Assembly (NCBI GenBank): GCA_030704615.1
Contig: CM060732.1
Coordinates: 17,422,001 to 17,486,000 of the forward strand
DNA from: Takakia lepidozioides
Lineage: Eukaryota > Plantae > Bryophyta
Direction: 5' to 3'
DNA: 64,000 nucleotides
Part shown: piece by piece, positions 21,821 to 50,126 of the stretch
How the letters are laid out: the number at the start of each line of letters is the position of its first letter
Numbering within the stretch: position 1 is the stretch's first letter
Position numbers and translations under genes: made by a program
The notes under the pieces: generated by a model
The model's input: the letters and a program-made list of their open reading frames with translations, nothing else
Told to the model about the DNA's origin: nothing
Database searches by the model: none

Positions 21821-22710
21821 GGGTGTGCATCAAAGCACACCGTTTCTGCCCCATCCAAAAGGCTTTTTTTTGAGGTCTCTTCAGACAACAACAAAAAGCA
21901 TGTAGGGTACTTGAAAGGATTGAATACAAAGTTGAAATGGTGCGCGTCAAAGCACACCGTTTCTGCCCCACCAAAAGGCTCAAATTTGTTTGCAAATTAG
22001 ACGAGAACACAAAGCCTAAAGGATCCTTGAAAGGGGTCGAATACAATGCATAAATGGTACCAGAAAACACTGCAAAGACGGTGTGCGGTGGCGCACACCG
22101 TCTCTGCTCCCTGTCAAGGTTCCTTTTTGTTTGAAACTTTGAGTGGAAGCGAAGGCAGTGATTAGGAATGAAGGAGATTCAGAATGATGCAGAAATGGTG
22201 TGCATCACCGCACACCGATTCTGCTGTCTCATTCGCTTCAGTTCCTTTGAATGCGCAGGCATGAAAAGGAGTTATGTGTACTGGGTAGAAGAAGGTTGAA
22301 TACAATGCAGAAAGGGTGTTCGTCGCCGCACACCCATTCTTCCCCTCATAGATCTTGGGTAGCAGTGTTGCAAGAGTAGAGTCTGCAATTGCAACGTCTT
22401 GTATTTCGGTGTGATTCGACACACCGATTAGGCTCTTCATCTAGAAATGGGGTCAGGCAGAATGGTGTGCGTTGACGCACACCGTTTTTCCAACCAACCA
22501 GGGGGGAAAACCAAAAAAAAAAAAGTTGGGGGGGGGGACAGAGGAGTGACGGGGCTTTAGAAGGTGTGCGGCAACGCACACCACTTCCCAGTGCAAAACA
22601 AAACGTGAAATTTTTTCAAGACAATGACTGAGGTGGAGAATCAATGACCGGCCTGGACAAAAATGCAGTAGAGAGTCGGCCATTGAGGATGTGCGTCACC
22701 GCACACCCTT
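21821..22710. repeat. Degenerate array of 22-bp palindromes, subfamily C (GGTGTGCG-N4-CGCACACC core)
   Basis: Copies start at ~21821, 21938, 22079, 22196, 22314, 22407, 22463, 22562 and 22687. Confidence 0.75.
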
Positions 22711-22779
22711 TTCAAGTGCACTGAACACGAACAAAAAAGAACAAGAGGCCAATGCATGAAGGGGATGAATTACCATCTC

Positions 22780-23115
22780 GCCTGGACAATCCCCTTTGGT
22801 TAGATACATCGTGTTGACACAGTTCCAAGTCTTTACTGCCCCGCATCCCAGAGGCTTTCAAGTAACTGGCAAGAGCTCAACGACAGCGCAGGTTGATCGA
22901 CTGGATGAGGACAAGAACTCCTGCATCTGAAAAGAAGAAGTTGCAAAAGGAGAACACCCACCGCCAGTACCGTTCATCAAAGGAGTTCCAGGTTGGGCAA
23001 GTATCCGCTGGAGGCACATCTGGAGTTCTGGGAGTCCATCTGGAATATCCAGAATGACCAACTCTGCTGCAAATGTCTTTTCTTTGCCGTTCCTCTCCAT
23101 TCCCTTTCGCACTAG
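22780..23115 (-). pseudogene. Fragment of the transposon-borne MTase gene (subfamily C), frameshifted
   Basis: NGKEKTFAAELVILDIPDGLP / PDVPPADTCPTWNSFDERYWRWVFSFCNFFFSDAGVLVLIQS closely matches the exon at ~46292-46625. Confidence 0.85.
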
Positions 23116-23219: not shown

Positions 23220-26106
23220 AATGCGTCTCCTATGTCGAGGCCCAAGTGCGATCTCTAGTGTCCAATGTCATCTAAGTCCAAGTGCAATCCCCTCTGCATC
23301 AAGGGACCTGTAGTTTGGGAGATCTCCACGTCATTGTTCCAACAAAGCCCACTTTGCTATTTTTGCAATCTCCCCTGTCGAGGCTTCATATATTGATATA
23401 TCCACTTTGCTATTTTTCGCAAATTTCCAGCGACCAAAAGTACTTGAAATTCCAAATCTCCCACATGAAGGGCCAATCACTGATCCTGGAAAGCCCACTT
23501 TGCTATTTTTCCCGAATTTCCAGCGACCAAAAGTACTCAAAATTCATGGGTAGCCTGTGCCGTTGGCCCAAGTGTCCAATGTCATCTAAGCCCAAGTGTA
23601 CGATCTTCTACGTATCCTAGTGTGTCTCCTATATTGTTGAGGCCTAAGTGTGACCTCTAGGGTAGCCTGTACCTTTGGCCCATGTGCGAAGAATTGAGAT
23701 CTTATAAGACTAAGTGCAATTTCCTATGTATCCCAGTGCGTCTCTTATGTCGAGGCCCATGTGTGAAGAATTGAAATCTAAGACCAAGTGCAATTTCCTA
23801 TGTATCCCAGTGTGTCTCCTATTTCAAAGCCCAAGTGTGACCTCTAGGGTAGCCTATGCCTTCGGCCTGGGGGGGTCACTATATGTATTTTTTCCATATC
23901 ACGTGCGTACAAAGGTATATTTGTACTAGGCTATACTTTTAAAATTTTACATTTTTTTCCACCCTATCTTTAGGTAATATTGTAAAACCCTTTGTTTTCT
24001 AACACCCTATTTTTTTAATAATTTTCTTTTGCAACAATTAATTAGATCATATTTTAAATTGTTCTTTTAAATAATTACGGAATTTCAAAGCATGTACACA
24101 AACAAGTACATTCCATATAGCATAAGTCAAATGTAGGACCCAAGAAAAAGTTTAATTTTCATTAGTCACGAACTCATTCAAAGCCGTAGCATCATTTGGA
24201 TCTAAAGAGCACAAGTTTTGAAATGGTTCATATGCCATAGTCACTGTTGAGATTACGATATCAACATCAATCCACTGTGTATCACTGGAATCATATGTCA
24301 ACTTCAGGTGACCTCTACCTGATTTCATCCTGATGGATTAGAGCTGGATGAAATATGAGAAACTTCACAAGGATGGATACATTATACTGTAGATAAAACC
24401 CTTTATTACATTAACTTTTTAAATAAAACTCTCGATTATTTGTGATTTTTAAAAAAAAAACCGGGTGAAAAGATATTGCCCTACCATATTTTCTAAGTAA
24501 TTTTTTTTCTAAAATTTACCTTAAAAATATTACACCCTATATTTGTTCTCACGCGGTTTTGAAAATATGGGGAGTGACCCCAGGGTCTTCGGCCTATGTG
24601 TGAAGAATTGAAATCTAAGACCAAGTGCAATTTCCTATGTATCCCAGTGCGTCTCCTATGTCGAGGCCCAAATGCGACCTCTAGCGTAGCCTGTATCGTT
24701 GGCCCAAGTGTCCAGTGTCATCTAAGCCCAACTGTAAGATCTTTTATGTATCCCGGTACGTCTCTATGTCGAGGCCCAAATGCGATCTCTAGTGTAGCCT
24801 GTGTCGTTGGCCCAAGTGTCCACTGTCATCTAAGCCCAACTGTAAGATCTTTTATGTATCCCGGTACGTCTCTATGTCGAGGCCCAAGTGCGACCTCTAG
24901 GGTAGCCTGGGCCGTTGGCCCAAGTGTCCAATGTCATCTAAGTCATCTAAGTCTAATCATTTTTTTTCCACAGATCCTACGACTAGATTTGAACCGGAGA
25001 CCTTTTCCTTGATATCGCTCCTGTCAAGGTCCCAGGAATGTTCACTTTGCTATTTTTCACGAATTTCCAATGACCCAAAGTATTTGAAATTCCGTATCTC
25101 CCATACCGCATGTCCAGAAATCATGAGACCAAGTTGGTGCACCCCTCCTCATCGAGGGCTTTCCAACGGTATCAAGCACCAGCGCTGGGCCCGCGGTTGG
25201 GGACATCTCAACATGACAAAACGAACAAAACACACAAACAAACAAACGTCTTGCTTCATATATTGACTAGGGGAATTTACTGATTAGTAATATATCCAAT
25301 CATTATTGATATATCTCCCGTCTCTAGGGTAGCATGTGCCGTTGGCCCAAGTGTCCAATGTCACCCAAGTCCAAATGCATTTTTTTTTCACAAATCCTAC
25401 AACCAGATTTGAATCGGAGACTTTTCCCTTGATATCTCTCCTGTCGAGGCTCCAACCATTTTCCCAGGAATGCCCATTTTGCCATTTTCGTGAATTTCCA
25501 GCGACCAAAAGTACTTGGAATTCCACATCTCCCACACTGCAGGTCCAAAAATTATGAGACCAAGCCCGTGCATCCCTCCTAGTCGAGGGCTTTCCAACGG
25601 TACCAAGCACCAGGGCTGGGCCCCGCGGTTGGGGACATCTCAAGGGCTGGCCCGCGGCTCGGGACATCTCAATGTGACAAAACAAACAAACTAACTAACT
25701 AATTGGCTTCCTTCATATATTGACTAGAGTAGCATGTGCCGTTGGCCCAAGTGTCCACTGTCATCTAGGTCCAAGTGCAATCCCCTATGTATCAAAGTGC
25801 GTCTCCTATGTTTAGGCCCAAATGCAACCTCTAGGGTAGCCTTTGCCGTTGGCCCAAGTGTCCAATGTCATCTACGTAAGTTTTTTTCCACAGAGCCTAC
25901 AACCAGATTTGAACCAGAGACCTTTCCCTTGATATCTCTCCCGTCGAGGCTCCAACCATTGTCCTAGGAATGCCCTTCAACTGCATAGGCTACACTAGAG
26001 GTCGCACTTGGGCCTCAACATAGGAGACACACTAGGATACATAGGGGATTGCACTTGGGCTTGGATGACAATGGACATTTGGGCCAACGGCACATGCTAC
26101 CCTAGT
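23220..26106. repeat. Cluster of the Helitron-like non-autonomous repeats, mostly +, with an inverted unit at ~25985-26106
   Basis: Repeated CTAGGGTAGCCTGTGCCGTTGGCCCAAGTGTCCAATGTCATCTAAG and CCTATGTCGAGGCCCAA modules, plus the CAAACAAAC..TTCATATATTGACTAG end module. Confidence 0.8.
23869..24586. mobile_element. 718-bp AT-rich non-autonomous DNA transposon (MITE/MULE-like)
   Basis: 9-bp TSD CTTCGGCCT at 23860-23868 and 24587-24595 interrupts a repeat unit. Imperfect TIRs GGGGTCACT..ATTTT..CGTG.G.ACAAA. Confidence 0.7.
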
Positions 26107-26136
26107 AACAGTAAAATAGGTTGAAATTTCATATCA

Positions 26137-29114
26137 CATAATGTCGTGCCTGCAGAACCAGAACTGGGTGGTTGTCGCCTCCGCAAACTTTGCATGGACA
26201 AATCTTCCTGTAAAAGTAGGAGCAGGGACAGCCCCATCTGGATTCCTCCTTATCATCTCTAAACAACGTTGCCGTGTATCCACACGAATTGAGGAACACC
26301 TTCCTCGAAACGACGGCTTTGTGCGAGCAATTCTCCACTGTGAGGCAGACACAGTCGTCTCCACAATGGCTTGGCCATACTGCATAACAGCGGGCGGAAT
26401 GTGGGGCAAGGGAGCGGTGGGAATTTGTTGCACGAAATCCCCGGTTGAAGGCGAGGGCGATCTGGAATTTCTTGGGCTTCCACTGCTGGAAGACACATTG
26501 TGCGGCAACATGACGGGACCTCGAGGTGCTGTCCGAATGTTCCTGTCGGATCTCCAGGAATCCTCTTCGCACCCGGGTTCCTCTTCAATCCTCCGCCTGA
26601 CAGGGCGAGTCCGGACGTCCCCCTCTAGGTGTTCACCTCTGCGGTGCAGAGGCGTCCCTTTGATCTTCTCTCGCAATGTTGTCGCCCATTTCACTGGATT
26701 CTTGGACCTCGAAGCTGTTCGTACCAACAATTCCTCCCTGTCCGGCCCAAAGCCCCATTGTTTGCCGCTCAGGAACTTGTAGTACGTGGCTTGCTGCATG
26801 ATTGCTCTGTCGATGTCCTCCGTTGTGGCCGTCACTACGTCCACCAGATGTGCGGTAGAAGACGCTCGCCAGGAGGAGTGGACCGATTCTGCCATATTCG
26901 TGTTCGGCATGTCCGTGTCGGAATCCAAGCACCGCTCCTAGAAGGACACAAACAACGGTGAGGGACCAATCGAAATGTCCGTAACAGAAAGACAAATGAA
27001 CGAAAATGACAGCAGCCTACCTCCCGCATGTACTGTCCGAACTGTCGATACCAAAAATGCCACCACCCCAACCAGCTGTGCAATGCTCCCAGATTGGTTG
27101 TCTCCACTGCACCTGACGTGTTCCACCAAGCCTCGATGATAGCAAACTTAACCTCCGCGTCATCAAATGTGGGTGCATCCTTCCACGCCGTACAAAGGAC
27201 ACGGTGTTCAGCCTGGAATGAGCTAGCAACAAATTTGGTAGTGTAGTGGGATAGACTCTGCATCCAATGGAATCCACAGGATCTCTCTTTCCCCTCCATT
27301 GGAACATTGGGGTCCTCACCGTACACACGCCGCACCGCTGCCCAGTTGGCCTGAGCGTTGTCTGCCATGAATCCCCTGAAATTGGGCTCTGGCAATCCCG
27401 CCCTTGCCATCTGCTCGTTTATGCCCTCCCACAGATGCATCTCGGACTGTGTGTCCTCCCCTTTCATCTCGCAGATTGCAATCGTCATGAGCCTCTTGGA
27501 GTGATAGTCATAAACATGCGCACCCATAGTCACCCACTGATGGTTTGTAATTCGCTTGATGTGATCAAACATCACCCAAGCATTCGACAAGTTTCCAGTT
27601 GTCATGCGAGTGACCAAGTCGACTCCACTCCCAGGCCCACACGTCGACATTTTGAAAATGTAACAACGATCGGATTCGCTGCCTTGCCCTGGAAACCTGC
27701 TACCTTGGATGTAGTCATATCCAGTCATTCGTTTCACCTCCAGGATTGAGTACATGTACGACCCCCTGCCGAACTCCTGCTTGCAAGATACGATGTGATT
27801 CCGCACATTCGGACTACAAACGTGCGAGACGGACTCCAAGAGGTCACGCATCTCGTCTTCGGTCAAGGGCTCTCGGTCGGAACCATCTTCAGACATGATT
27901 TTGCCAAGAGCAATCTTGTGGGCTGCCTTCAGCTGAATCTGCTTTGGTCTGGCTCCGGGGCTCAATTTCACCTCCTCTTTTATGATGTCGTGTGCTTCCT
28001 GCACAGCCTCACGCATGTTGCCTCTCGCCAAGGGGTGGCAGTGGACCCCAACGTGTATGCAAGCTCTAGTCAAGTCCGGGAGCAAATGGATTACGTAATA
28101 TTGCTTGGCTCTGCACATGGACATGCACGTCGGTGGTTCTTTGCAATGTGCACACTTGAAAGAACCCGCAGGAGCTTGGCTGGAGACAATGAATGGATGA
28201 TGCGTTGTGCCAGTCCAATCCGTCTCGTTTCTCCGCCCTCCTTTGGAGAGAAAGTGGAAGCAGGTGGGATTGAGGCACCTCAGCTTCCCCGCACAGAGGA
28301 CATATCATACACGAACACCATCAGCAATTTTCGTGCTACTGGTCTTCGTCACACACCAGGGGTGTCCGTCATGCTTTCGATCCATGTCTGTTAACATCCC
28401 GGAGGCTTTCTTTGACGAAGAAACAGGTGGAAACTCGAAGATGACATTGCCATCGACTTCGGGAGGCAGAAAAGTTACCTTTTTGACTGGGAATTTGGCA
28501 TAGTCGAGAGCAGCCAGCTCGGAGCGAGAACCATCGAGGTGATGTTGTCGTAGGAGCTGCACAATGGACCGGGTTGGAGTTATGCGAGAGGGCACATGCG
28601 TAGCACCTACAGAGACGTCCATGCCGGATTTGAACGACCGTGTGGAGGACATGGGTACCTCAATGCAATCATCTTCCTCGTCGGAAATGTCGAATACGTC
28701 CACACGAGAAGCTATGGAGGGTCTTGACGGTCCAGGTCGGGAATGATTATCGTTGCATACCTCTCTGTTGGCAGTGGCCGCCTCTCGGTTTCCGGACTCC
28801 TTTGTGGATGGTGTGGGCAGCGACTGATTCGGAAAGGGAATGGGCATTCCCACAGCTCGGTACAGGATGGTGTCTGACGGGGGAACGTGCCATTCGATTC
28901 CGCAACCTCCGTCGTTACCTAGCACGACAATGGTCTCGTCAACCTGTCCAGGAACATCCTTCCTTTCTTCTTCCAAATAAACTGTGCCCGGTTTGAGCTT
29001 GAATTTGGAACAAAGGTAAGTTTCAGTCACTCTGCAAAGTCCTCCCTCGTTTGGGATCCAGGCTCTCCCAAGTTGCGGAGGACAGCAAACTATAGCGTAG
29101 GAATTCGGAGCCAT
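26137..29114 (-). pseudogene. MULE-type DDE transposase with N-terminal GCM-like zinc domain (copy A)
   Basis: ATG at 29114 (MAPNSYAIVCCPP). In-frame TGA at 28305-28307 where copy B has Arg. Motifs WVMFDH, FMADNAQA, SCGFHW (CxxH) and NTNMAESVHS; intron ~27018-26940. Truncated before the SWIM finger. Confidence 0.9.
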
Positions 29115-29543
29115 CGAACACCGCACGGAGTTGGCAAGTGCGAGGTTCAGTATAGCGACAGACCAAGGCTCACAGGCACCATCTAAGTGGATCTGCGGAG
29201 TCCATCGACAATTGGAAGTCGCACATTGAAGTGGAAAGTATTGTTTCAAGCTACATGCATGAAGGTGGGAGGTTTGATTCCATAGCCAGTGAGTAGGACA
29301 ATGATGGCCGATTCGGCGACGAAATAACATCTCCTGACAGTTTCTCCTGAGGGTGGATCCAGCAGTATTCTCGGTGCAGACAGGAACGTTCGCACTGACA
29401 AGTGCCAGGACTGCTGGTTAAAACGGTCAGACAACCAAGTTGTGCTCATCAAGACTGGCCGCAATTGTGTTGTTTCGGAACAATGCAACCCATTGAGGTT
29501 CCAGATTTCCCGTCACGAGTGATTCTGTCGATTGCTGGTGGAC

Positions 29544-31195
29544 GGAAATACGGCGCCGCATTTCCGTATTGCATCTTGGTCATGCAACAGAGCGACGGAA
29601 ATGTGGCACCGAGTTTCCGTCCGGGGGAAACCTTTATACTCTCCAGAACGGAAATGCGGTAACGCATTTCCATCCAGCAAGCACGGTATGTGAAGGTGGA
29701 ACGGAAATGCGGTACCGCATTTCCGTTCTGATTGAGATTTATGAACAACGGGAACAGAAATGCGGCACCGCATTTCCGTCCGAGTCGCACTTTTCGACAT
29801 TCCAGAACGGGAATGCGGCGCCGCATTTCCATTTTGTATCTGATGCATGGAGCTGAGGGATAGAAATGCTGCAGCACATTTCCGTCCTTAAAAGACATTC
29901 ATACTCTCGAGAACGGAAATGCGGTACCGCATTTTCATTCAACAAGCACGGTATGTGAAGGTGGAACGGAAATGCGGTACCGCATTTCCGTTCTGATTGA
30001 GAATTATGAACAACGGGAACAGAAATGCGGCACCGCATTTCCGTCAAAGTCGCACTTTTCGACATTCCATAAAGGAAATGCGGCGCCACATTTCCATTTT
30101 GTATCTGATGCCTGGAGCCGAGTAAGATTCCGACAGCTTCATACAGCGCAATTCCGACCGGTTGAGACATTCACACTATCCAGAACGGAAATGCGGCACT
30201 GCATTTCCGTTCTGACTGAAAATCGTGAACCATCGGAACTGAAATGCGGCAACGTATTTCCATCCGAGTCGCACCTACCATCATTCCAGAACGGAAATGC
30301 GACACCGCATTTCCGTTCTGACTGAAAATCGTGAACCATCGGAACTGAAATGCGGCAGCGCATTTCCATCCGAGTCGCACCTCCCAACATTCCAGAACGG
30401 AATGTATTAGATTAAAAGGGAAATGCGGCACCGCATTTCCGTTCTGATGAAATATCCTGAAACATCGGAATTGAAATGCGGTACCGCATTTCCGTCGGAG
30501 TCCCACCATCCGACATTCCAAAACGGAAATGCGGCACCGCATTTCCGTTTTGTATGTGAGGCATGGAGCTGTGGAACGAAAATGCGGGAAGGCATTTCCG
30601 CCAGCGTCAGACGTTAATACTCTACAGAACGGAAATGCGGTACCGCATTTCCATTCTGACTGAAAATCGTGCACAACGGGTACAGAAATGCGGCACCGCA
30701 TTTCCGTTCGAGTCGCACCTTCCGACATTCTCGAACGGAAATGCGGCGCCGCATTTCCGTTTTGTATATTCGGCCTGGAGCTGTGCTACGGAAATGTGTT
30801 GCCGCATTTCCATCCATGTGAGACCTTCAACCTTTCCAGACCGGAAATGCGACACCGCATTTCTGTCCAGGTGAGACCTCTATACTTTCCCGAACGGAAA
30901 TGTGGCACGGCATTTCCATTCATCAACTAACGTATGTGAAGTGGGAACGGAAATGCGGCGCCGCATTTCCCTTCTGAATCTCATACATGGAGCTGTGGGA
31001 CGGAAATGCGGCACCGTATTTCCGTTCAACAACTAAGGTATGTGAAGGTGGAACGGAAATGCGGTGCCGCATTTTCTTCCAACAAGTACGGATGTGTAGC
31101 TTCGTGATGGTACTTAACGGAAATGCGGCGCCGCATTCGCATTCTCGCTCCAACTCATCAGACGCTGGGACGGAAATGCCTTGAAATGTGAACAC
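29544..31195. repeat. ~30 palindromes GGAAATGCGG-NN-CCGCATTTCC at a 53-bp period, between the divergent transposase and ParB-MTase genes
   Basis: Starts at 29544, 29597, 29650, 29703, 29756, 29809, 29862, 29915, 29968, 30021, 30074; 30187-30346; and 30419-31055, each step 53 bp. Spacers are variable, with a partial 5-unit (265-bp) higher-order repeat. Confidence 0.95.
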
Positions 31196-31576
31196 GTGGA
31201 GCAACGGAATTGCTGCACATGTCGGCACTCTATCTGACTGAAGGGGCATGAGGCGGCGCGGCCTGACCGTTGGATAATGATGTTTGATTTTCGGACGGCG
31301 GGCGTACCCTCAACGATTCGAATTTCGTAATGACGCAAACTCCACGAGGAGACACTTTCGTCCAACCTTTCGAACCCAAGTGGTGCATCACCGCCGTTTC
31401 ATCTACTTTTGTCGTGTCTCCTCAGTCACCCCTCTCGCGCCCTTTCCATCTGCACTCTTTGCCCCTTTTTCCCTCTCTCTGTTCTTCTTATGCTCGAACC
31501 TGAGAGGGGGGGAGTTCGTGCACCAGACAGGAGACCTCGTCGCAAGCTCCGGAAATTATACTTCGGACGTAGGCCA

Positions 31577-34500
31577 ATGCCGAAGGGGAGGAAGCAGATG
31601 CGTCTACAGGAGGAGATTGCCATCTCCGAGCAGCAGGCCACTCAGGCAACCCAGCCACCAGTGAGAGCTCCATGCGATCGGGCTGCGCGCAGCTGATCGA
31701 GCACCGAACCCCCCATTTTGCTTCTGTAATTCTTAGACTGAATGCTAGGAGACTTGAATGCAGAACATGTTTGCATGCCTAACAGGAAAGGTGGACGTGC
31801 TGGAGGGATCGCAGGAATCCGAAGAGCCGCAGGAAGAGTCCGAGGAGCTAGCTGCAGCACGTACACCCACCCGATCCCCGAGCGCGGGTACTCCTGCCGG
31901 GCCTAGCCCTCTGCGATTCAAAGACGCGTCTTCGAAGGGCAAGTTCAAAGTCTCAGAGATCGACTCGCGTTCTTCGATCATGGAGAATCGCCAGCAGGGG
32001 TCGGGCCCTTCTCCAGCAAAGTCGAAGAAGAAGCAGCCCGTCCCTCTACTGGCTTCTGAACCGGCTCAAGCCGATTCACCCCCCCCAACGCGAATGAAGC
32101 AGCAGGGTAGAAGACAGATTCTATTGCAGCAGACACCTTCACCTGCAAGGATGAGGAAGCAGAAGGCAATCAGGGCGACGGCCGAACAATCTCCCGCAAA
32201 ACCGCTTCCACGAGCTGAAGCTCAGTTCCTGGAGATTTCCCGCCTGCAGATGTTGGGGCCGACTCTGCTGCAGCGAAGGCAATGGGATCGACCGTTGATC
32301 TCGATTTGGTACCGGAGGAGGGTGCTGCCGCTGAACGTTCGCAGGCAGACCTCACCACCGATGAGCTAGCAGGCCCGGAGGAGGCCTCTGCAGTGGCAGA
32401 ATTGCCCGCACACAGGCCCCAGAGTGCAGCTCCAGTTGAGGATGCTCCACCTGCTCAACCACTACCGGCACCTACAGACATGTCTCCGGAGGATTTCAAA
32501 AGTGCAGCGGATAAAATGTTGGAGGAGACACACAGTAGCATTGGCAGAGTTCTGGGCAGCAGGGTATTCCAGCGGACTCTTCGAATCCCACTCTGTCGCA
32601 TGGTCTCCCTTCCCATCGTCAGGCAGGCCCTTCCCGGAGATGTGGATAAGCTCAAGTTCGCATTTCGAGAAGGGTACCGTCTGGGATCGGCAGCGTTTTA
32701 CGTTTCCATAGAGAATGAGGACGGCGAAACCCGTGGACCCACTGCCGATGAATTGTCAACGTGGGATACCCACTGGCACACTCGCAACCACGAATTCGAG
32801 GCGACGCTGAAGGGTGATCCCGACTTCGGCCATATGTCGGGAAAAATGTTCTTTGTGTGGGACGGGAATCACCGACTTCTCGCCTGGTGGGAGTACATCA
32901 AGCAGAACCATGCCAAGCACATTGGCTGGCATTACATGGTGGAGTGTGTCATCCTCAAGGTGAAGGCGGCAGACTCCTCCCTCCTCAAGAATGCCATGGC
33001 GGACCTCAACTCGTAAGATACTCATACCCTCCCTAGCACATTCGAAATGCGGTGCCGCATTTCGGTTTCCATTCTGGTTTGATTCCGTGCTTCCGTGTAC
33101 TGAACTGGAGAGTGTGCCTTGCAGGGTCACTGAGAATGCGTACGTGCATACCCACATGGCACATATGCTGTACAGGGTGAGGAAAACTGGTCTTACTGAT
33201 CCGCAGATGTTTGCGGAAATGCTGGAGCCGGAGCTCATTCAGAAAGCCGTTGCAAAAACAGACCGGACATGGTATCGTCTCACTATGGATGGAATGGTGG
33301 AGGTGATATACGAAGTAAGTCGTGCTCCATTTTCCCTCTGCTCATCCTTCCCCAATTTCCAGTAATGTTTCCACATGAATCGAATGTAACGCTTCTGCAT
33401 GTTTTTGTTGGCAGTCAAAATCAAGCTGGATTTGGCCCATGCCAAACGCTTCTTCATGGAAAGTGAGGGGCAGGTCAAAACGTTGCAGTCATTGACTGAG
33501 CACTTGAAGGAAGCCGGTGTCAAGTCCAGAACCAAATACAAGTCAAAGCTTGTGAAGCTGGTGGCAATTGCAGATCCGGCACTTGGAAAGGACTTCATCC
33601 CCGAGATTGCAAAACACTATTCTCGGGCCATGCAGCCGACCATGCAATTGGAGAAACTGCATCACCTCTCAACGGCATGTGTGGAGGCGAAAGAGAAGGT
33701 GAGGTTTCAATGCACTGAATTTCCTTCCTAGCAATAGCCACTCTCTTCCAGCCACTGACATTGGATCGGAAATGGCAGACACGGTGGCTGTCGATCTGGA
33801 ATGCATCCGAGAGCATAAGGACAATGTGGTCTTTTCCACTGGAAGTTTCCGACCCTGCAGTGGATGTGTGGCTCAACCGTATGACTTGGTGGTTCCAGGT
33901 AATTCAAGGTACTTCCCCAGATTTGCTTTTCTGACATGAATTCCCTGAACTGCTACGTGACAATGCATTTGGGAATGGCAGGTAATGTCGAATGCAAAGG
34001 AGCAAGTCGTAATGCACACAATTCGTTCGGCTTGTACGTCAAATGGGATGGAACACAGACATTGGAAGACTACGTGACACGTTTCAGATGTGCGTACAAG
34101 GACAACCTTTTCGCCAGAGAGCTACAGACAGCAAGAAGGAGCGTGGAGTTTACACATCAGGAGGGAGCGGGGAAAGCTGCAATGCGAATTGTTTACAGGT
34201 GAAGCACAGCTGCCCTTGTATGCGAAGCCTGGTTACGAGGTTTGTCTCGGAAATGCGGCACCGCATTCGCATTTTATGTTTTCGGTGGCACTCTGCCAGT
34301 AGGTTGGTCTCAAGTTTTGCTCACGCATGCTGACTGCCTTGCAGGTATATGAAATACGTGCTCCTTCAGACAGGGGCCTGGCTCAAGAGCCCCCGTTCTT
34401 CATGGCTTGGACCGTGGCGGGCCCAAGCTGTGTCTACACACCCGAGATGCAGAAACAATGGCATCCCGCGCATCTCGTTGGATGCCCGTGGTACCTGGAC

Positions 34501-36689
34501 ATGTCTGGCGGTATTGTTGACGAGTCTGAGAAAGATCTGCACGCCTTGGCAGAAGAGAAGAGAAAGGAAAGACGTGTCCCTGCTGGGCCAAAGTCGGCAA
34601 AGGAATCTGCTGCTCTGGAAGAATCCAGAAAGGCAGCTGAGATGGCACAAAAGACGGTGGATGCAGCTGTGCAGGCCCAACAGAAGGGGTCGAAGAAGAG
34701 GACTCGCCAGCAAGGAGCAGCTGTTGTGACACCCGCCAAAACGAAGAAGCAGAAACAGCCTGTTCAGGAAGAGGGTGAGGAAGAGGACTCCGATGGAGAC
34801 TTTGCAACCAGCCCACCCCCCCAAACGCAGGCTGCCCCTGTGCCCACCGTTGTCACCAGAGGCACGAGAACTGGCTCGGCAAAGAAGGCACTCTTCAACC
34901 CCCCAGGGGGGCACCCTTTCGAGCCGGTGGAAATGAAGAGGCCGAAAGTGGCTCCCGAAACTGTAGTCCAGTGTGTAAATGAGAGTTTCTTGGCGGCTTT
35001 GGATGGACGGGCAGCCAAGTTGGCATACATGAAGACCATGGAGGGTCTGAAGGGCAGAGCACTGAAGAAGGCGACGCCGAAGAGCCTTCCGACACCCAGG
35101 ATTTCAGATATGGTCTCGTTCTTTGAGAGGGTGTGTGCAGACAAGGATTGTAGGAGGGGCGGAAATGCCACCGAGTGGTCTTGCGATATGATCATCTTGG
35201 ATATTCCGGACGGAGAGCCTGTGGAAGGACTGCAAGCTTTGCCATCTTGGAACAGGTACTCGGAGGACTTTTGGAAGAAAGGATTCGGGCTTGCCCGCAT
35301 GGTGTTGGACGACAGAGGCTGTGTGGTTGTCCTGGCGAGCAGAGGAAAAAACACTCAGACAGGAATTGCGAAGTGGACCCGCAAGAGCGCCGTCCCGATT
35401 CTGAAAAAGAAGTGGACGTGCATCAACACACTGGGCCTTCGGTCGGAAGGGAAGAAGGTGATTACGACACTGGCACTCGTCCATTCATTTGCTTGGGTGC
35501 TTTCAAATGCGGTGCCGCATTCGGTTTCTAATCGTTTTCCCCCTGTGTATGCAGACGAAGCAGTTCGATGCATACTGCTTTGTGAAGGAAAACTCCACCT
35601 TTGCTTTCCGGAAGGAGGGAGGAAAGGTTGACCCGAACTGCGACCCACTCGATTACGACGTTCTGTTCAACAACGTTCCCAAGGAACTTCTCCCTCATAG
35701 CCTCACTTCAACGGAACCCCTGCGGTACTCACGGACTCGGAGCCCTGCCTTCATTCAGACAATTATGGAGACATGCACAGACGTGGAGGCACAGTGCTGG
35801 ACCTCATCTGTGGGACAGGTATGCAGAATCTTGATCTCTGCTGTTCTGCAAATTCTCGTTAGGATGTAGTTCGCAACATCTGAAGCGCCATGTGGTAATG
35901 TGTGGATGGCATTGTAACAGGTGCCTCAATGTGGGCTGGGCGGTTTTCCGACCGGCACCTCTTTGCCTACGAGGAGGATTCATCCGTGTGGGGATCCCAT
36001 CTGGAGGGGCTGCAACGGAATGTGAAGGCTCCCGACAGAGCGGAAGTCTCCTCGGATTCGTCGGAGTCCGAGGAAGACACAGTGGACATTGATGCAGAGG
36101 AGAACCCGGAATACGAGTGAGTGCAAACATTGTAAGTTTGCAAAGCCTTCTGGGTCATTTATGTCAAAGGAATTTCCCGACTGTGGTTCTCATTAGTCTC
36201 GTTGATGATTGTCATGTGCAGGATTGCAGGGTCCGGGTCGAAACATGTAGGGCCTACACTTCCTGCCAGGAAGAATGTCCCGTTCTTTGCGAGGGCCGAC
36301 TTCATGACGAGCCCGGTGAGGGACTACTCCCTTCCTAGTTATGCAGCTAACTCGCAAATACAGCGATTAGAAGAAGTGAGAATCCCAGTAAAGTAGAGCA
36401 GATTTTGGAGAGGGCTAGGGAGGACAGAAGGATAAGGAAAGAGTTGGCAGCAGCTCAGACAGGTAGACGGGTACGAAAGTACATATGTGATTCAGCGGAT
36501 GAGAGCGACGCAGACAGGGAGGAGGACGACCCAACGGAGGTGAGATGGACAGTTCCGCAAGGGGAAGATGGGATTTTCGAAAGCCTGGCCAACGAGCAGT
36601 CCGCTGGAGATGAGAGAGGCACTGAGGGGGTGGAGGAGGAGCAGGACAGTCTAGAACAGGATGAGGATTCCGATGATTTTCAAGATTAA
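31577..36689 (+). pseudogene. Spliced ParB/Srx-domain plus beta-class amino-DNA-methyltransferase-fold fusion gene (copy A)
   Basis: About 10 GT-AG exons, approx. 31577-31660, 31749-33012, 33125-33314, 33415-33698, 33779-33898, 33982-34198, 34345-35457, 35555-35818, 35921-36116, 36222-36689. ParB-like IPLCRMVSLPIVRQALPGDVDKLKFAFREGY...FFVWDGNHRLLAW. MTase motif IV region CDMIILDIPDG; motifs X-I-II RSPAFIQTIMETCTD..GGTVLDLICGT|GASMWAGRFSDRHLFAYEED. Frameshifts near 32220-32280 and 35783; stop at 36394. Confidence 0.82.
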
Positions 36690-36876
36690 TAGAATTTTAA
36701 TGAAGTCTCTGTAAATGTAAATTCTCTTCCAGAGTATATAAAGAAAATTCTGCCCGACATTCGTGACCCCTCTCCAGTGTGCATTCCAGCCACACAATCG
36801 CCCAAACCAGGACGCTCCCAAATCAGAAATGGGTCAGGGCATTTCCAAAATTTTGGCAACTCTAAGAACCTCTTTT

Positions 36877-37655
36877 GGAAATGCGGCACCGCATTTCCAA
36901 AACAGGGGAGGGACTAATTTTTCCATTTCAATGTTGGCATAGTAAAAAGTAATCTGAATTGGGAATGCGGTGCCGCATTCCAAAATTTCCTTTGTCCACA
37001 CGCCAGTTTTGGCCTCTCCCGCTCATTGCATGGATGCCACCACGCTTACAGAGGTCGAACAAGGAGGTCGAACAAGGAGGCCGACATGGCGGGATTGGAA
37101 ATGCGGTGCCGCATTTCCATATTGGGGATGGTGGTTGTTCGAACTGCAGACCCATCAGCAAAAACTGGCACCGCATTCCATTGTAAAAAAAAAGTCGATG
37201 ACGGACATGGAAATGCGGCGCCGCATTTCCAGAACGGACATCGCAATTTGTCAATTTGCAGACCCTCTCTCGGAAATGCGGTAACGCATTCCATCGCGCT
37301 GGTCGGAAATAGGTGCACTTTTCGAAGTGTTGGACGGAAATGCGGCACCGCATTCCCTTGTCCAAAAAGAAGTTTCCATTCCCAAGCTGGAAATGCGTCG
37401 CCGCATTTGCAATGCCAACCTCGTTTTCTGATCAATTTATAGACCCGTGTTGGTATTTCGTGTACCTGGACGGAAATGATGCACCACATTTTCTTGTCCC
37501 ACATGGAAATGCGGTGCCGCATTTCGATGTCCGACATGGAAATGTTGTGCCGCATTTCGATGCGGACATGGAAATGCGGCACCGCATTTCGATCCCGACA
37601 TGGAAATGCGGCGCCACATTTCCATGCCGACATGGAAATGCGGTGCCGCATTTCA
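36877..37655. repeat. Second subfamily-A palindrome array, downstream of the MTase gene
   Basis: Copies at ~36877, 36961, 37097, 37209, 37272, 37336, 37389, 37472, 37505, 37538, 37570, 37602 and 37634. Confidence 0.9.
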
Positions 37656-38168
37656 ATGTCCGACATGGCGTTACTCTGGTATATTCTTGACACATGACTC
37701 ACATACCGGTTACTCTGCTTTATTCAACCAGACAGACAAATTGTAGAAATGAGACATCAAATTGTAAACAGTGGGCCAAATCCGAGAGTTATTCAACACA
37801 ATGAAACACAGTCATACATAAGTGAGGTACATTCCAGGGCACACTCCAGGGCACATTTAAATTTCCCCCGTACAGGATCCTGGACCGATGAAGATTGGCT
37901 GCTGCATGAATGTAGCCGTTTCAGTTTCCTACCCTGCCATGCAAAATGGGCAGTCACTGCCAGGTGGGCCGATAGCCACTGGACACGACGAAGTCCATCC
38001 CCTCTTCGATGTAATGCGGCGCCGAATTTCCATCCGGGGGGATGGACTTCGGTGGCAGATCTCAAACTATAACTTGTTGATGAGAAAGATGTATGGCTTC
38101 ATCCACCGCTGGCGTGATGAACACGTTCCACCTCCGTCGGTGGGTACGTGTGACCCAGATGCTCCATT

Positions 38169-38843
38169 TTGGAGGCCGGACTGCTCTTCCGCTTCGTATC
38201 TTTTCCAAAATCTAAGGGCTTCGTAGCTGTCCGCAAGGTCATCGGCATCCAAGTCGTCCTCAGGTCCTCCTTTGCAAGGATGCCGTGCTTCCGGAACCGG
38301 GTCGACTGCCCCTTTGGAGGCATCGATTATGCAATGTATTCGGCCACATCGGGAGACATTGTTATCTGGTACACAGATTACACAGAAGATACTGGTTCGA
38401 TTGTGGAAACATTGGTGGCTTTTGAGTATATCGTAGGCCACTACGCCTTCGAGCGGGGTGACGATCTTGGTTTGAGGAGTCCGTGGCTCCTGCGCATCCT
38501 CGATTCCGATTTTCCCAGCTACGACGGTCACCCATGCAGAAGAAGGCGCACTGCTATGCTGTTGCGGTGGAACTGCTGCCACTGGACGTGGGTGGACTCC
38601 ATCGGAGAGACCTATTCTCCTCGAGGAGTGCGCTCCTCTTCTCCATTGTATGGGGACATTCGCATTGGTGTGGACGACGAAAACGTGAAGATTTCCATAT
38701 TCGATGGTGGTATGATTGAAGGGCAGGACATTGTGGTGAACATCACTAGGGGCGGTACAACGGCTGCAATCGACTTTACATGGAGGAGCCCCAGGACTCA
38801 TGAGCTAGTTCTGAGAGCAGTCGAAGTCCCATTGACAACGTGA
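38169..38843 (+). CDS. Hypothetical third ORF of element A; strand uncertain because antisense ORF 38067-38801 is also open
   Basis: 224-aa open frame between the second array and the TIR; no motif recognised. Confidence 0.3.
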   Translation: MEAGLLFRFVSFPKSKGFVAVRKVIGIQVVLRSSFARMPCFRNRVDCPFGGIDYAMYSATSGDIVIWYTDYTEDTGSIVETLVAFEYIVGHYAFERGDDLGLRSPWLLRILDSDFPSYDGHPCRRRRTAMLLRWNCCHWTWVDSIGETYSPRGVRSSSPLYGDIRIGVDDENVKISIFDGGMIEGQDIVVNITRGGTTAAIDFTWRSPRTHELVLRAVEVPLTT

Positions 38844-39306
38844 CTTGTATTCAGTAGGCACAGGGCTCAAGATTTGAGGGCACAATCAGCACAATAGACG
38901 TGCTTCAAATGCAATTCATGTGGATCAATAAAAACCTCATTGTGCCCTCTTTTTATTCTATTCTGTGTCCATTGTTCCGAGAATGCGTCATTGCTCATTT
39001 CGTTTGGGATTGGGAGTGTGGGTGAATTTTGCAAATGGCTGGTAGGCTGAAATGGGCCCCCATTGTACAGAGCAGTACCACCCTACCATTCGCGAAACAT
39101 TGCCTTTCAATATATAATTCTAAATAACATTGCCGAACCTCCTTCATCGGGAGGTCCTTCTCCCCCTATGACCGTGGCACCCTAAACCCTATTCCCGCGG
39201 ACACTCATTTCCGGAAAATAGTGCTGCTCATGTTTTTTTCCACACTTACGACTCTGCTCATGGCTCATGCCGCTCATGGCTCATGGCTCATGAAATAGCA
39301 GCCCCC

Positions 39307-42300
39307 CATTCAGCTTCTTATAGTTCACACATACTCTTAGTTTGCCATTCTTCTTGGGAACTATAACAATGGGTGACAACCAAGTTGTATACTCTATTGG
39401 GTATATAAACTTAGCCTCAGCCAACTTCTTTATCTCTTCTCCAACCTTCTGTGCGTAGTTGGGATTCATTCTATACCTCGCCTGCTTGATTAGTACTGAC
39501 CCTGGTTCCAGTTCAATTTTATGCTGACAGACTTCAGGTGGTATCCCTTTTAGATCCTCATAGCTCCAAGCAAATACATCTCTGTATTTGATGAACAAGC
39601 TTTTAGCTTCTTCGAAGAACTCTGGCTCCAAATCAGCTCCTACTTTCACCATTCTCGGTTCCTCCTGAGTTCCCACATTTACTTCTCTCACCTGCTCATC
39701 AGCTGTGATTGTCCAACCAGTCACCACTTCATCCTTTAAGCTCACAGTGGCTGGTTCTTCTAGGATTTCTATCTCTCCCTCCTTTTCTTCATAGAAATGT
39801 GGTGGGTAACAGTTGGTTTCCTCTTCAATTGGTGTTGCTGTCACTACACCACAGCAGATACCTCTCAAACAACTTAGGCTTTCCAGCCGCATCTCTGCAA
39901 CCTGCTCCCATTCTGGGTGTGCAGCAAATAGGGTAGCTTCCTGCTCCTCATCCAGTCCTCCCCTCCAGTCATACTCTCTGACTCCTCGAGGTCTTCTTGT
40001 AGCAGGTAATCTACTAGATTTCTTTGTGGTAATTTGTATCTCATGCATCCCATTATGCACAGTTAGTAACTGAGAATTCCAGTCATGGAATACCCTGGCC
40101 TGTTTCAGCCACGGACGTCCCAATAATAAGGAGTAAGCCTCCATGACTTCATCCATTTTTAATACAGTTATTGTGATCATAAAGATCATTTTCTGTATCT
40201 GTATCTTAACTCCTCTTATTAATCCCAATGGCTGTACACTTCTTTGATCTGCCATTGTTACTGTAAATGGGGCTGGTTTCATGTTACTTAGACCAAGCTT
40301 CTTCCTTAATTGGTCTGTCATGATATTTACTCCAGAACCACCATCTATCAGTACATCAGTTAGTTCTGTGCTTCCAATTCTCAATTGGATTATTGGCATA
40401 GAATCATCAAAGTCCATGACTGGTTCTCGCCCTTCCGGCTTCACATTATAACTGGTCACCTTGCTGTTCAGGTCTGTGTTTCCTGTCTCTTGGGCAATTC
40501 GATTGATTGCCTGATACAGCCTGTGCCTACAATAAGGTGCCACAGCTAATAGCTGTCCAATGGTAATTTCTGCTTTGGTCTGACATATTACTTCAGCCAA
40601 AGTCTCTTCATTACTTTGCATGTCTGCATCTTCTTTTTTCCTTTCTTCCTCACTCCCCTCTTTTTCTCCATCCGAATCAGAGGAATCTGCCACAGGAATA
40701 TCCGTACTCTTTTGCATTTCCCTTATAGTATCTGCCACTTCCTTGTGCAGTTCCTTCTCATCTTTCCAAGTCTCTTCATCTTCAGGCATATCATTGCCAC
40801 TTCCAGTCTCATCTTCTTCCTCTTCTACTGGAGGTATTAGTTTGGCTTTACTTCTTGTTACTATCATTGTACTTACTTCTGGTACAACACATGGCCTAAC
40901 CATGTGAGCTGCCACCACTGGGCCCTCATTCACAGGAGCTCTCATCTCATTCTGGTGTCTTATCCAGAATGAACAGGCTGCCTTGCGATGTCCTGGCTGA
41001 TTACAATAGTAACATAGCTCTTCACCATTGGGTCCTCGCCCTTGGTCTGTTCTTGGATTATTTCTATAATCCTGATTCCCGGGCTGGTAATTCCCCTTGG
41101 ATTACCCTGATAGTTGCCTCTGGAATTTCCTTGGTAATTCCCTCTTGAATTACCTCTCCCTTCCATGCCATTGTTATAACCACCAGACCTACCATAGTGG
41201 TCCTGATCATTATTTCTTCTTGGCTGGGGCTGCACTTGATGCACCCTTACTTGCCTAGGTTCTCTTGCAGCTGTCCTTCTGTTGTAGTAACAATTCTCAG
41301 TAGAATGGTTATCCATTTTACAGATAGTACAGTGTTTCTCCTTCATGTGGCATTCTGCAGTGGTATGGCCTTCATTCTGGCACTTTGCACACCATACACC
41401 CTTCCTCCAATGTGTTGCAGCCTCTGTGGCATACTTCTTCAAGATTTCTTCCAATCTTTTCTCATAGTTATCCCTCTTCAACTTTTCCTTTCTCTTACTC
41501 TTTCTTTTTAGTTCTTGCTCTTCTTCTTCATCTGACTCATCTTCAGAGTCCTCATCTTCCTTTTTCTCTCTCCTGAGCATTCCCAATTGCTCAATTCTGT
41601 TTGCAGTTTCAAATGCCTCCTCCACTGTATTATGGGGTAACATATCCACTTTCTTCTGCAACTCTGGTCTTAGTCCACTCACAAACCAAGTCTTCTGTAA
41701 ACCGGGTGCTGGTACTGCAGCCAGCTTTTTCATCATCAATTCCATCTTCTCCATATACTCTTCAACAGTTTCATGCTTCTTCTGCTTCAGCTGTTGTAAA
41801 CTTCCATACACTTCATCCTCAGTTTTACTTGTCCTGAACCTATTTCGAAATGCTGTATTCAAGCCATTCCAGGTTAGAAAATGATTATCAGGGAATCTTG
41901 CATACCATTCACTTGCTTTCTTGATAAGTGAACAAGGAAACAGTCTCATCTTGGCATCATCGCCATTCTCATTGTTCACTATACACATGTGCTCAAATTG
42001 GCTAATGTGTACATCGGGATCCCCTTTTCCTGAATATATTGGAAAGGGTGGTTTTGCCCGTGTTGGTTGTAACGCCATCTGTGGCCCTACCTTCTGCCCA
42101 CTGACAGGTGCTGGCACCCTTGCTGGTGCTGGTCCTTCTGGACCTGTTGTTTTTGTGGTGGATCTTCCACCAAGTGGTGGCCCTTGAGCACTCCCTGCTT
42201 CTGGCCCCACGATATTCACAGTATTCCCAGCTTCAGTTGCACTACTTCCCACACTCCCTGTCCCCCCAGAGCCAGATTCAGGCAGCCCGCCTGATCCCCC

Positions 42301-42828
42301 TGAGCCGACACCTTCGTTGGCCTGTGATCCAAGTGCTCCACTTGATCCAGGTCCAACGGGTTGGGATGTCCTGGTTGTAGTCTCAACCTCAGCTGTTGGG
42401 TCTACTTCTTCATATTCTTCCTCTTCTAATTTCTTCTCTCTGTTTTCATCCTCCAAGTTCTGCCCTTGGGTTTCTTCTTCACTCATGTAACTCAACTGTA
42501 ATGGTGTTGGAGAGTCTGAACTCTCCGTTGGCTCTGCCACATCCTCATCTCCTTCTTCATCTTCTGCTTCAGAAACTGGAGTTCCTGCTTTTGGTGTTCC
42601 ATGCCAACTCTTATCAAAGATTTCTGTCAAGTCTTTTATCCAAGGATGTACCTCAGATCTTTCACCTCGTGATTGATCTTCTTCCTGTACCAATTCCCTT
42701 AATCTTTCTTGCAAAGAAACAGAAGGAGTGGCATCCAACTCTAGTTCTTCCGGTATAGGTGATGCACTTTTGATCTTGATGGTGTGAGAGGTCCAGATGA
42801 TTCCCCTATGTCTATTCCTCTCTCCCAA
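39307..42828 (-). pseudogene. Gypsy gag-pol polyprotein with one frameshift, truncated in RT
   Basis: Retrotrans_gag-like YSGKGDPDVHISQF..LFPCSLIKKASEWY; zinc knuckles CAKCQNEGHTTAEC, CTICKMDNHSTENC and (pol frame) CYYCNQPGHRKAAC; protease VLIDGGSGVNIM; RT WLSPIVIVPKKNGKLRVCVNYKKLN. Frameshift near 41095. Confidence 0.92.
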
Positions 42829-43625: not shown

Positions 43626-44142
43626 GACCTACAGCCAGTGTATCATGGGGGTGTTTCCTATTTGTTTCCCTTTTCGCATTCATCTTAGCTACCTTACCAT
43701 TGATAATTAAGTATCAGTTTGCTTCATCAATCTATCGGTTTCCTTCACTCATCCATTCAATCCACAGCTTCACTCAGATCTCTCTACACAGTGTGATTGT
43801 ATCGTATAAGTATCAGATTATGATTTATCAGGTATCAGGCCGAAGCCATTATGTCTCTAATCTGCTCTACAATATCACTACAGCTTTGCATATAACAAGC
43901 ATCTACTAATCCTCTTTCCTCCTTCATCGTGCTCACCGACTTCCGCTCCCGCCTGACTCCGAAGTCCTCCCCGAATAATGATAATAATGATCCCTTCATC
44001 ATTCCCCGTTCTTCCCTTTATCCTCCTATCCGCGGTTCTAACCGTTTCCCTCTCTAACCGTCGTATGTGAACTAACATGTTCCCTTCACTGGTGTTGTTC
44101 CCCACAGTCGTTCCCTGTCCTACTCTTCGTTCCCTATTATCG

Positions 44143-49825: not shown

Positions 49826-50126
49826 GGGGTTGTAATGTGACGGCCCGGTGCCGGCTTCTCCCCTTCAACCGACATCATCCGGGCGGCCCCCCACTTTCTG
49901 ACTGCATACCGTTGGCAGTTATTGCGCAAAGACCAGGGGCCGCATTCCGGAGAAAATGTTCATTAACACTCTGACTGTGGATTTTTGAGATAGTTGGATC
50001 CCTGGATTTGGATCAGGCTTCGTCGCTCGGACAAATCGGCACCGCATTCCTTCCCATCGGTGCATCCCCCTTCTACTAGGGAGCTTGCCCGCACGCCATC
50101 CTGGCAGTCTTATGTGCACATCTCCC

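Follow-up and report, generated by a model that had tools for sequence, protein, structure and literature searches.

ParB-like and N4-cytosine/N6-adenine (N4C/N6A) methyltransferase genes have lately been reported on giant DNA transposons of brown, red and green algae (PMC12477816; bioRxiv 10.1101/2025.02.11.637652). In Ectocarpus, the 21.5-kb element Sola1-1_Ec32 encodes a protein of 1104 amino acids (aa) that combines a ParB-like part with an N4C/N6A methyltransferase part (Dinatale, Craig et al. 2025; PMC12477816), and binding and modification of its own element have already been proposed for this protein (PMC12477816). On red-algal Plavaka elements, the gene PAG2 joins PF01555 to a SET domain (Petroll et al. 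2025; bioRxiv 10.1101/2025.02.11.637652), and PAG3 joins an N-terminal ParB-like domain, with 7BNR as its best HHpred match, to a 2-oxoglutarate (2OG) oxygenase (bioRxiv 10.1101/2025.02.11.637652). Tandem inverted-repeat arrays adjoin the ParB-bearing PAG3, homologues occur in Mutator elements of Chondrus, and the only tested self-acting case that this study names is VANDAL/VANC (bioRxiv 10.1101/2025.02.11.637652). No land-plant clade with a link to ParB figures in the survey of eukaryotic adenine methyltransferases by Iyer, Zhang and Aravind (2016), and our literature search found no report of such a gene in land plants. Here we describe a gene of this kind, gene 2, on a stretch of 64,000 nucleotides from Takakia lepidozioides (contig CM060732.1, positions 17,422,001 to 17,486,000 of the forward strand; hereafter the window), where it lies within a large and very probably Mutator-like DNA transposon.

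From our sequence and structure analyses, we conclude that gene 2 belongs to the class of accessory genes with ParB-like and DNA-methyltransferase domains lately published in algae. By its identity, its folds and its membership of the element, it is most probably a true accessory gene belonging to a cut-and-paste, Mutator-like family of land plants. It shares the hallmarks of the algal accessory genes, being located inside a transposon, on the strand opposite the transposase, with both domain types encoded and with arrays nearby. The window holds most of the transposon (unit 1, 26134-39307), which consists of a transposase gene, a first palindrome array, gene 2, a second array and the right terminus. 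The head-to-head arrangement described in an initial annotation of this DNA is confirmed: transposase-like open reading frames (ORFs) on the minus strand (26134-29330) face a multi-exon gene on the plus strand (31758-36689).

That annotation was also right in describing gene 2 as spliced, although the exons number nine and not about ten. They lie on the plus strand at 31758-33012, 33125-33314, 33415-33698, 33779-33898, 33982-34198, 34345-35457, 35555-35818, 35921-36116 and 36222-36689. All eight introns are bounded by GT..AG, and the exons form one uninterrupted ORF of 1370 aa in a model with one base added after each of positions 32233, 33419, 34019, 34376, 35787 and 36348. These six bases are carried by every read contig that covers the six places, and the frames at 34376 and 35787 have independent support from a diverged paralogue that is also present in the window. 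A contig from run X1 joins 33634-33698, 33779-33898 and 33982-34148, with the introns 33699-33778 and 33899-33981 spliced out. Comparison of the window with the read contigs, sampled as the 40 best-supported of 165 differences, gave 14 synonymous and no non-synonymous substitutions within aa 234-1299; non-synonymous changes were confined to the low-complexity N-terminal 232 residues and the acidic C-terminal tail. The absence of non-synonymous changes alongside 14 synonymous ones in aa 234-1299 argues strongly that gene 2 is under purifying selection and that the proposed frames are right. Since all six one-base gaps are filled in the covering read contigs, and since every substitution in this stretch is synonymous, the gaps are likely to be assembly indels and not signs of decay.

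The pairing of gene 2 with this transposase recurs in other genomes. The named relatives of the N-terminal domain belong to a liverwort, Riccia sorocarpa, and to two ferns, Adiantum nelumboides and A. capillus-veneris, and the remaining representatives are mostly ORFs from metagenomes or Logan. Annotated members of the family number more than 40 in Riccia. One of these, P0153 (KAL3677308.1, 1207 aa), matches the gene-2 protein at both ends, with 33% identity over the N-terminal domain and 27% over the region of methyltransferase motif IV. Its locus (L001; CM100801.1) contains a homologue of the unit 1 transposase on the minus strand (4794-7614; 35% identity, as compared with 6088-7191), an array of the palindrome ATTCCGGCGAG(G/C)CTCGCCGGAAT (8504-9372), gene 2 on the plus strand (P0153, 10001-13843) and a second array with another palindrome (14652-15166). 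On a metagenome contig (L003), the transposase on the minus strand (2109-4486; 44% identity, as compared with 2842-3786) stands head to head with gene 2 on the plus strand (from 9568; 46% identity). From the linkage in Riccia and L003, the more than 40 Riccia members and the position of the gene between the transposase and a true terminus, we conclude on sequence grounds that gene 2 is the element's own gene. The tie between gene and element drawn in the initial annotation is therefore upheld by the same gene and transposase pair in Riccia, where arrays are present, and in L003, and a one-off Pack-MULE capture is disfavoured.

Some further observations concern these loci. The Riccia arrays carry two palindromes, ATTCCGGCGAGSCTCGCCGGAAT and GTCCAGCGGAnnCCGCTGGAC, whereas the arrays of the window share one. 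No clear palindrome array was found upstream in L002. An inverted repeat of the Riccia locus (2129-2171/15990-16033) was considered as the ends of a Stowaway miniature inverted-repeat transposable element (MITE), which was rejected because the subterminal region of unit 1 has a similar motif, TCCGGAAAT(A/G)AGTGTC.

The N-terminal domain of the gene-2 protein (aa ~274-419; 32576-33013, plus strand) contains an IPLC...VR box and the sequence VWDGNHRL (32855-32878; aa 367-374 of 1370). A HMMER search with the ORF at 32219-33013 against 1.84 billion representatives retrieved 462 proteins at E<=1e-3, all of them aligned at query residues ~118-264. The AlphaFold model of window positions 32540-33013, built with a 63-sequence alignment, had a predicted local distance difference test (pLDDT) score of 92.7. 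In a Foldseek search of this model against the PDB, the first 48 matches were all ParB/Srx proteins, with weak E-values of at least 8.6e-3. A second look with VIA gave a Z score of 8.3 with Caulobacter ParB (7bm8), at a root-mean-square deviation (rmsd) of 2.5 Å over 97 aa. When the domain was compared exhaustively with 48,161 chains by VIA, just 14 reached a Z of at least 2, and the top 12 all have the ParB/Srx fold: they include KorB (Z 7.9), PadC (7.8), sulfiredoxin (6.9) and Osa (2.5), together with pNOB8 ParB, a serine kinase, Atu1540, SbnI, Spo0J, GmrSD and SspE. The first unrelated chain had a Z of 2.2. By shape, the neighbours of the domain in the ESM Atlas are clusters of ParB_N (PF02195) and DndB (PF14072).

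Conservation within the family centres on the same site. Residues G109, N110, H111 and R112 of the model are shared by all, or by at least 90%, of the 63 sequences, in which P17, L18, C19, V27 and R28 near the start of the domain are also nearly invariant, and DGNHR or EGNHR is present in 91 retrieved homologues. The GNHR loop corresponds to the phosphate-binding GxxR-type loop of the superfamily (GERR, GCHR or DGQHR) and lies at the junction of strand 104-108 and helix 110-123, which matches its position in the ParB/Srx family. The DGNHR sequence is as close to the DGQHR/DGQQR of DndB and DUF262 as to the GERR of ParB. We conclude from the model that the N-terminal domain belongs to the ParB/Srx superfamily, though as a divergent member, and the ParB/Srx signature first noticed in VWDGNHRL is thus supported at the level of the fold by AlphaFold, Foldseek and VIA. 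By analogy with ParB, the gene-2 protein might bind CTP, form a clamp and spread along DNA. Searches by sequence gave less: the N-domain profile had no match among PDB sequences, phmmer of both domain ORFs against the PDB returned chance matches alone, and nothing in phage genomes matched the ParB domain by tblastn.

The approximately 550 residues between the two domains hold blocks that are conserved in the window genome, Riccia and Adiantum. The middle module (aa ~420-745; 33125-34510, plus strand), with the blocks DPxLG..F, W.L, FRY..VW and CPWW.D, matched no known family or structure in a profile search against the PDB or by Atlas features.

The C-terminal domain (35038-36060, plus strand, exons 6-8) contains, in this order, IILDIPDG as the equivalent of motif IV (35191-35214; aa 973), the spliced motif I VLDLICGTG (35794-35922; aa 1142) and RHLFAYEED (35953-35979), the acidic strand after motif I. 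Such an order, from IILDIPDG through VLDLICGTG to FAYEED, is that of the beta class, and the placement of the motif IV region before motif I in the initial annotation holds for the spliced protein. The domain is homologous to residues 914-1010 and beyond of Riccia P0153, and its structure was modelled on this intact homologue because introns and a frameshift interrupt the window copy. The AlphaFold model of P0153 residues 925-1180 had a pLDDT of 68 and a predicted template modelling score (pTM) of 0.73. Foldseek matched it to CcrM in the PDB with E 5e-11, followed by M.BceJIV, M1.HpyAVI, M.MboIIA, M.RsrI, the rotifer N4CMT and M.PvuII. In a second look with VIA, CcrM scored a Z of 17.7 over 215 aa and other beta-class enzymes Z 15-17, as compared with ~10 for MT-A70 enzymes. 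A search of the family profile against PDB sequences ranked M1.HpyAVI first (E 7e-4), ahead of CcrM, an N4C methyltransferase and M.RsrI. From the modelled structure, the C-terminal domain is judged to be a beta-class N6A/N4C methyltransferase fold, in keeping with the amino-methyltransferase fold annotated from the start.

The Pfam results agree in part. Of the two families named in the initial annotation, ParBc (PF02195) was unmatched, but N6_N4_Mtase (PF01555) was found in 12 of 23 members of the family alignment at E<=0.01 (best E 1.9e-7), with no other family. P0153 and two fragments, P0151 and P0154, matched PF01555 with E 5e-5 to 9e-6 (23.7-26.2 bits), at profile positions 165-218 of 221 alone, the end of the profile that holds motif I; a few members from Riccia come with a precomputed match to PF01555. 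Motif I and the following strand read VLDLICGTG...FAYEE in the window and IVIDFAGGWG...IVAE in Riccia, and align with DIVLDPFMGSGTT...IGIE of M1.HpyAVI. Both the motif I that binds S-adenosylmethionine (SAM) and the acidic residue that ends the next strand are conserved in the family. The motif-IV site is D-[LMIFV]-[PS]-x-G in all 33 family sequences in which it could be located, with a variable residue (D/T/S/I/R/F) at the aromatic position; DLPSG occurs 12 times, DMPTG five, DLPTG four and DMPSG three times, and the window has DIPDG. A search for homologues of the C-terminal ORF region in the length range 243-773 aa found none, and tblastn of the C-terminal domain against phage genomes gave weak matches (E 0.01-0.1), all of them phage DNA methyltransferases. 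The UniRef name of Riccia P0151, P0153, P0154, P0172 and others is 'Trimethylguanosine synthase'. It looks like an annotation artefact, as Pfam and structure indicate an N6_N4 DNA-methylase fold.

Palindromic repeats accompany gene 2 on both sides. Array 1, between the divergent genes (29544-31140, 1.6 kb), holds 25 copies of the 22-bp palindrome GGAAATGCGGNNCCGCATTTCC, with spacings of 53 or 106 bp in 19 of 22 intervals; in the window as a whole, this palindrome has 42 matches where none is expected. Array 2, downstream of gene 2 (36877-37655), holds 11 palindrome cores, and a hybrid core follows further on at 38013. The 16-bp core AATGCGGNNCCGCATT occurs 38 times (0.01 expected), all within 29547-38028 and none elsewhere in the 64 kb. 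Exact cores are also present within gene 2, in intron 1 (33046-33061), intron 5 (34252-34267) and intron 6 (35506-35521), so the palindrome does occur on both sides of the gene and in three of its introns, as had been noticed at first.

The spacings lie near multiples of ~10.6 bp, both in unit 1 (29547-31137; 53, 106, 64 and 113 bp) and in the array of a sibling element described below (48370-49817; 53, 85, 138, 96 and 192 bp); spacings of 73 and 240 bp are off this multiple. Such spacing would place the palindrome sites on one face of the helix.

The transposase gene of unit 1 (26134-29330, minus strand) consists of three overlapping or adjacent ORFs (28305-29330, 26835-28124 and 26134-26928) that encode ~1000 aa, and the frame changes between them are either introns or indels. 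Its product is 53-74% identical in amino acids to that of a second copy at 50061-53079. By ESM-Atlas features, the transposase was grouped with clusters of Mutator-like elements (MULEs) at 0.95 with 173 shared features, and its ten best named matches all belong to one clan. Read directly from the sequence, the residues D..(~67 aa)..D..(28 aa)..CxxH fit a MULE transposase. We regard the transposase as very probably Mutator-like, because the 8-bp target duplication, the terminal inverted repeats (TIRs) and the D..D..CxxH spacing all fit Mutator. At 26835-26928, and likewise at 52310-52400 in the second copy, one transposase ORF overlaps, with its final 30 codons, the first 30 of the next in another frame; this overlap, found in both copies, may reflect a small intron, a site of frameshifting or an indel.

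The right terminus of unit 1 (39270-39307, minus strand) reads GGGGGCTGCTATTTCATGAGC followed by CATGAGC repeats. This combination occurs exactly three times in the window, at 39307 as a right end, at 48248 as a left end and at 54471 as a right end. Unit 1 had been described as a TIR-bounded unit between 26137 and 39306. Its right boundary stands, as 39307 is a true terminus that matches the ends of a sibling element, but 26137 is merely the stop codon of the transposase, where the similarity between the two elements ends. An alignment of 26050-26500 with the reverse complement of 37650-39400 was no better than shuffled sequences. The homology break at 26137/53079 was likewise rejected as an element end, as it has no inverted partner and coincides with the stop codon.

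The sibling element, unit 2 (48248-54471, plus strand, 6.2 kb), is made up of a TIR, an array, a degenerate transposase and a second TIR, and is without gene 2. Its array of the variant palindrome AATYCGGCGCCGAATT (48370-49817) starts ~120 bp from the terminus, and its transposase (50061-53079) is degenerate and frameshifted. An 8-bp duplication, CTTTTACT, is found on both sides of unit 2, and the 21-bp termini with their CATGAGC repeats are identical at 17 of 21 positions; unit 2 thus has the TIRs and the 8-11-bp target duplication of Mutator elements and MULEs. It looks like a deletion derivative of the family that lacks gene 2. Two other copies of gene 2 are found in the window. The paralogue at 44569-47235 (plus strand) is 5'-truncated and frameshifted, covers aa 504-1180 only, with 29-51% identity, and thus lacks the ParB part; it is located beyond the bounds of unit 2. 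The third copy (22646-23106, minus strand) is a fragment with the motif-IV region of the C-terminal domain.

Adjacent to the terminus of unit 1 is a Ty3/gypsy retrotransposon (39308-42828, minus strand), with gag (Retrotrans_gag, Ty3_capsid), protease and the start of the reverse transcriptase (RT). The RT ORF is broken after ...VCVNYKKLN at 39308, where it abuts the terminus. Two features were sought to place the left end of unit 1: the missing RT half with the rest of pol, of which none was found in the window, and another occurrence of ATTCAGCT, the putative target duplication, which was not found either. A repeat of 170-240 bp occurs three times in direct orientation (43518-43759, 48059-48238 and 54472-54708). 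Two of its copies, 98% alike, lie directly to the left and right of unit 2, which suggests that unit 2 was inserted at the junction of tandem copies. An unrelated, MITE-like family of short, internally inverted repeats is present at 24596-26106, 19060-19640 and 59000-61280; the first of these begins at 26106, ~30 bp past the stop codon of the unit 1 transposase, and replaces the sequence beyond the stop.

Several of our results weigh against reading gene 2 as a genuine accessory gene of a Mutator-like family. The window copy of gene 2 needs six frame repairs, the type of run X1 was merely guessed to be RNA, and the left terminus of unit 1 is not in the window, which leaves this copy without a left end. 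Pfam gave no match to the transposase ORFs even at E<=10, PF10551 included, none to the raw ORFs of gene 2, and none to the N-domain ORF (E<=1) or ten long homologues (E<=0.1), ParB_N PF02195 included. No helix-turn-helix (HTH), other DNA-binding or dimerisation domain was found after the N-terminal domain by profile search against the PDB or by Atlas features. The model of the C-terminal domain rests on the Riccia homologue, with ~27% identity and a pLDDT of 68, the PF01555 scores of P0153, P0151 and P0154 lie just below the gathering threshold of 26.7 bits, and the catalytic (D/S/N)PP(Y/F/W) is absent in all 33 family sequences that show the motif. As for the arrays, the sibling unit 2 has a regular one without gene 2, and no clear palindrome array was found between the genes of L003. 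One could therefore see in gene 2 a host fragment captured once, in the style of a Pack-MULE, or a decaying pseudogene without function, given the six frame-breaking one-base gaps of the window copy, the two other copies in the window, which are fragments, and the many database homologues that are fragments as well. However, synteny with the transposase is kept at 30-46% protein identity in Riccia and on the metagenome contig, the conserved core has 14 synonymous and no non-synonymous substitutions, a spliced, transcript-like contig exists, and the six gaps, filled in every covering read contig, are probably assembly indels. We consider capture or decay highly improbable, and maintain that gene 2 is most probably a genuine accessory gene.

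Concerning its function, the gene-2 protein would be brought to the phased palindrome arrays, either by ParB-like, nucleotide-switched DNA binding or by the transposase, and would there act on the DNA or chromatin of the element in a way that favours expression or transposition, through self-marking or anti-silencing. Action at the arrays is put forward tentatively. It is possible, though doubtful, that the arrays are instead subterminal transposase-binding sites, as in En/Spm or Ac, and that gene 2 has a task unrelated to them and, for example, aids transposition or counters silencing in trans. The array of unit 2, present without gene 2, could be of this kind: unit 2 is bounded by TIRs and a target-site duplication, and it combines a transposase with an array that starts close to its terminus. 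Furthermore, the palindrome differs between subfamilies whose transposases also differ, and L003 has both genes but no clear array. On the other hand, the arrays bracket gene 2 and not the termini in unit 1 and Riccia, with array 2 ending 1.65 kb from the terminus, and exact cores lie inside three gene-2 introns. In addition, ParB-family proteins classically read palindromic sites, and the red-algal arrays adjoin the ParB-bearing PAG3. Nothing here marks out the gene-2 protein, over the transposase, as the reader of the palindrome. We also consider it unlikely that gene 2 is an active N6-adenine/N4-cytosine methyltransferase whose CTP-dependent ParB clamp loads at the palindromes, spreads and methylates the element. 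An intact motif I and acidic strand in a beta-class fold, a ParB/Srx fold with a conserved GNHR loop, helically phased arrays to either side of gene 2 and purifying selection on the whole C-terminal domain would fit such an enzyme, and the idea has already been published for algal homologues or analogues. Yet the DPPY motif is replaced by D-[ILMFV]-[PS]-x-G with a variable aromatic position in 33 of 33 sequences, the ENLQR-like box III of ParB was not identified in the gene-2 protein, and an HTH was not found. The family-wide loss of DPPY and the TIR-proximal array of unit 2 without gene 2 weigh against a simple model of a methylating ParB clamp, and marking of the element by methylation, one way to read the proposal of the initial annotation, becomes doubtful with the catalytic motif absent in all members that show the motif site. 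Because this motif is non-canonical, occupancy or SAM-dependent regulation appears at least as likely as deposition of N6-methyladenine (6mA) or N4-methylcytosine (4mC). A still more specific scheme, in which a eukaryotic, transposon-encoded ParB-type nucleotide switch loads at the phased arrays and coats or bridges the element, while the methyltransferase fold has lost base methylation, with DPPY changed to D-x-P-x-G, and has been repurposed as a SAM sensor or as a reader of DNA or flipped bases, strikes us as rather improbable. If true, it would amount to a partition-like or nucleoid-occlusion-like self-recognition on land-plant chromatin and not to a simple 6mA/4mC writer. Our best reading is that DNA methylation would be one of several possible outputs of a protecting or marking factor recruited to the arrays.

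The occurrence of gene 2 in land plants is of importance in several respects. There are very few known examples of transposons whose proteins recognise the element's own DNA and act upon it. A gene of the algal kind, under purifying selection, is now found in Mutator-like elements of land-plant lineages, namely in the window genome, a liverwort, two ferns and many environmental contigs. Its spread over algae and land plants points to a transposon strategy that is both old and widely distributed, and its occurrence in land plants brings the question into experimentally tractable plants. With DPPY lost throughout the family, the published view of such a protein as a methylase of its own element may be wrong where the land-plant branch is concerned. 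The analysis also corrects the automatic name 'Trimethylguanosine synthase' borne by some Riccia members in databases.

The comparison with known systems can be made for each domain and for the element as a whole. Like the chromosomal ParB/Noc/KorB CTPase clamps, the N-terminal domain has the fold (Z 7.9-8.3, rmsd 2.4-2.9 Å over 90-97 aa), a GxxR-type loop at a strand-helix junction and palindromic sites, here in arrays; it differs from them in its identity of 10-15%, in having no Pfam ParB_N match and in showing neither a recognisable HTH nor a recognisable dimerisation domain at the C-terminus. The C-terminal domain resembles CcrM, M1.HpyAVI, M.MboIIA, M.RsrI and M.PvuII in having motif IV before motif I, with VIA Z 15-17.7 over ~200 aa, and shares with beta-class enzymes the motif I (V/I)xD..G.G followed by an acidic strand. 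In contrast to these enzymes and to the ParB-associated N6_N4 methyltransferases of prokaryotes and phages, gene 2 lacks (D/S/N)PP(Y/F/W), contains introns and is carried by a eukaryotic transposon. Among the eukaryotic N4C methyltransferases of bacterial type, the bdelloid rotifer N4CMT (8s9m) has the same beta-class fold, with a VIA Z of 15.3. Marchantia MpDN4MT1, a 4mC enzyme with the catalytic motif TSPPY, is encoded by a host gene and expressed in spermiogenesis; it too has the beta-class fold, whereas the gene-2 family is without the catalytic motif and transposon-borne. VANC of the Arabidopsis VANDAL MULEs is, like the gene-2 protein, an extra protein of a Mutator-superfamily element, and acts on its own sequence motifs, although it has neither fold and the analogy is functional only. 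With PAG2 and PAG3, gene 2 shares PF01555-type and ParB-like folds and inverted-repeat arrays by the ParB-bearing gene; in the red algae the folds are on two proteins of an EnSpm/Plavaka host, whereas gene 2 encodes both in one polypeptide, with ~550 aa between them. Ectocarpus Sola1-1_Ec32 is a Sola1 element of a brown alga and unit 1 a Mutator-like element of a land plant, and the two are likened here by description and not by sequence, but in both a large DNA transposon carries, on the strand opposite its transposase, an accessory gene for one large two-domain protein, of 1104 aa in Ectocarpus and ~1370 aa in the window.

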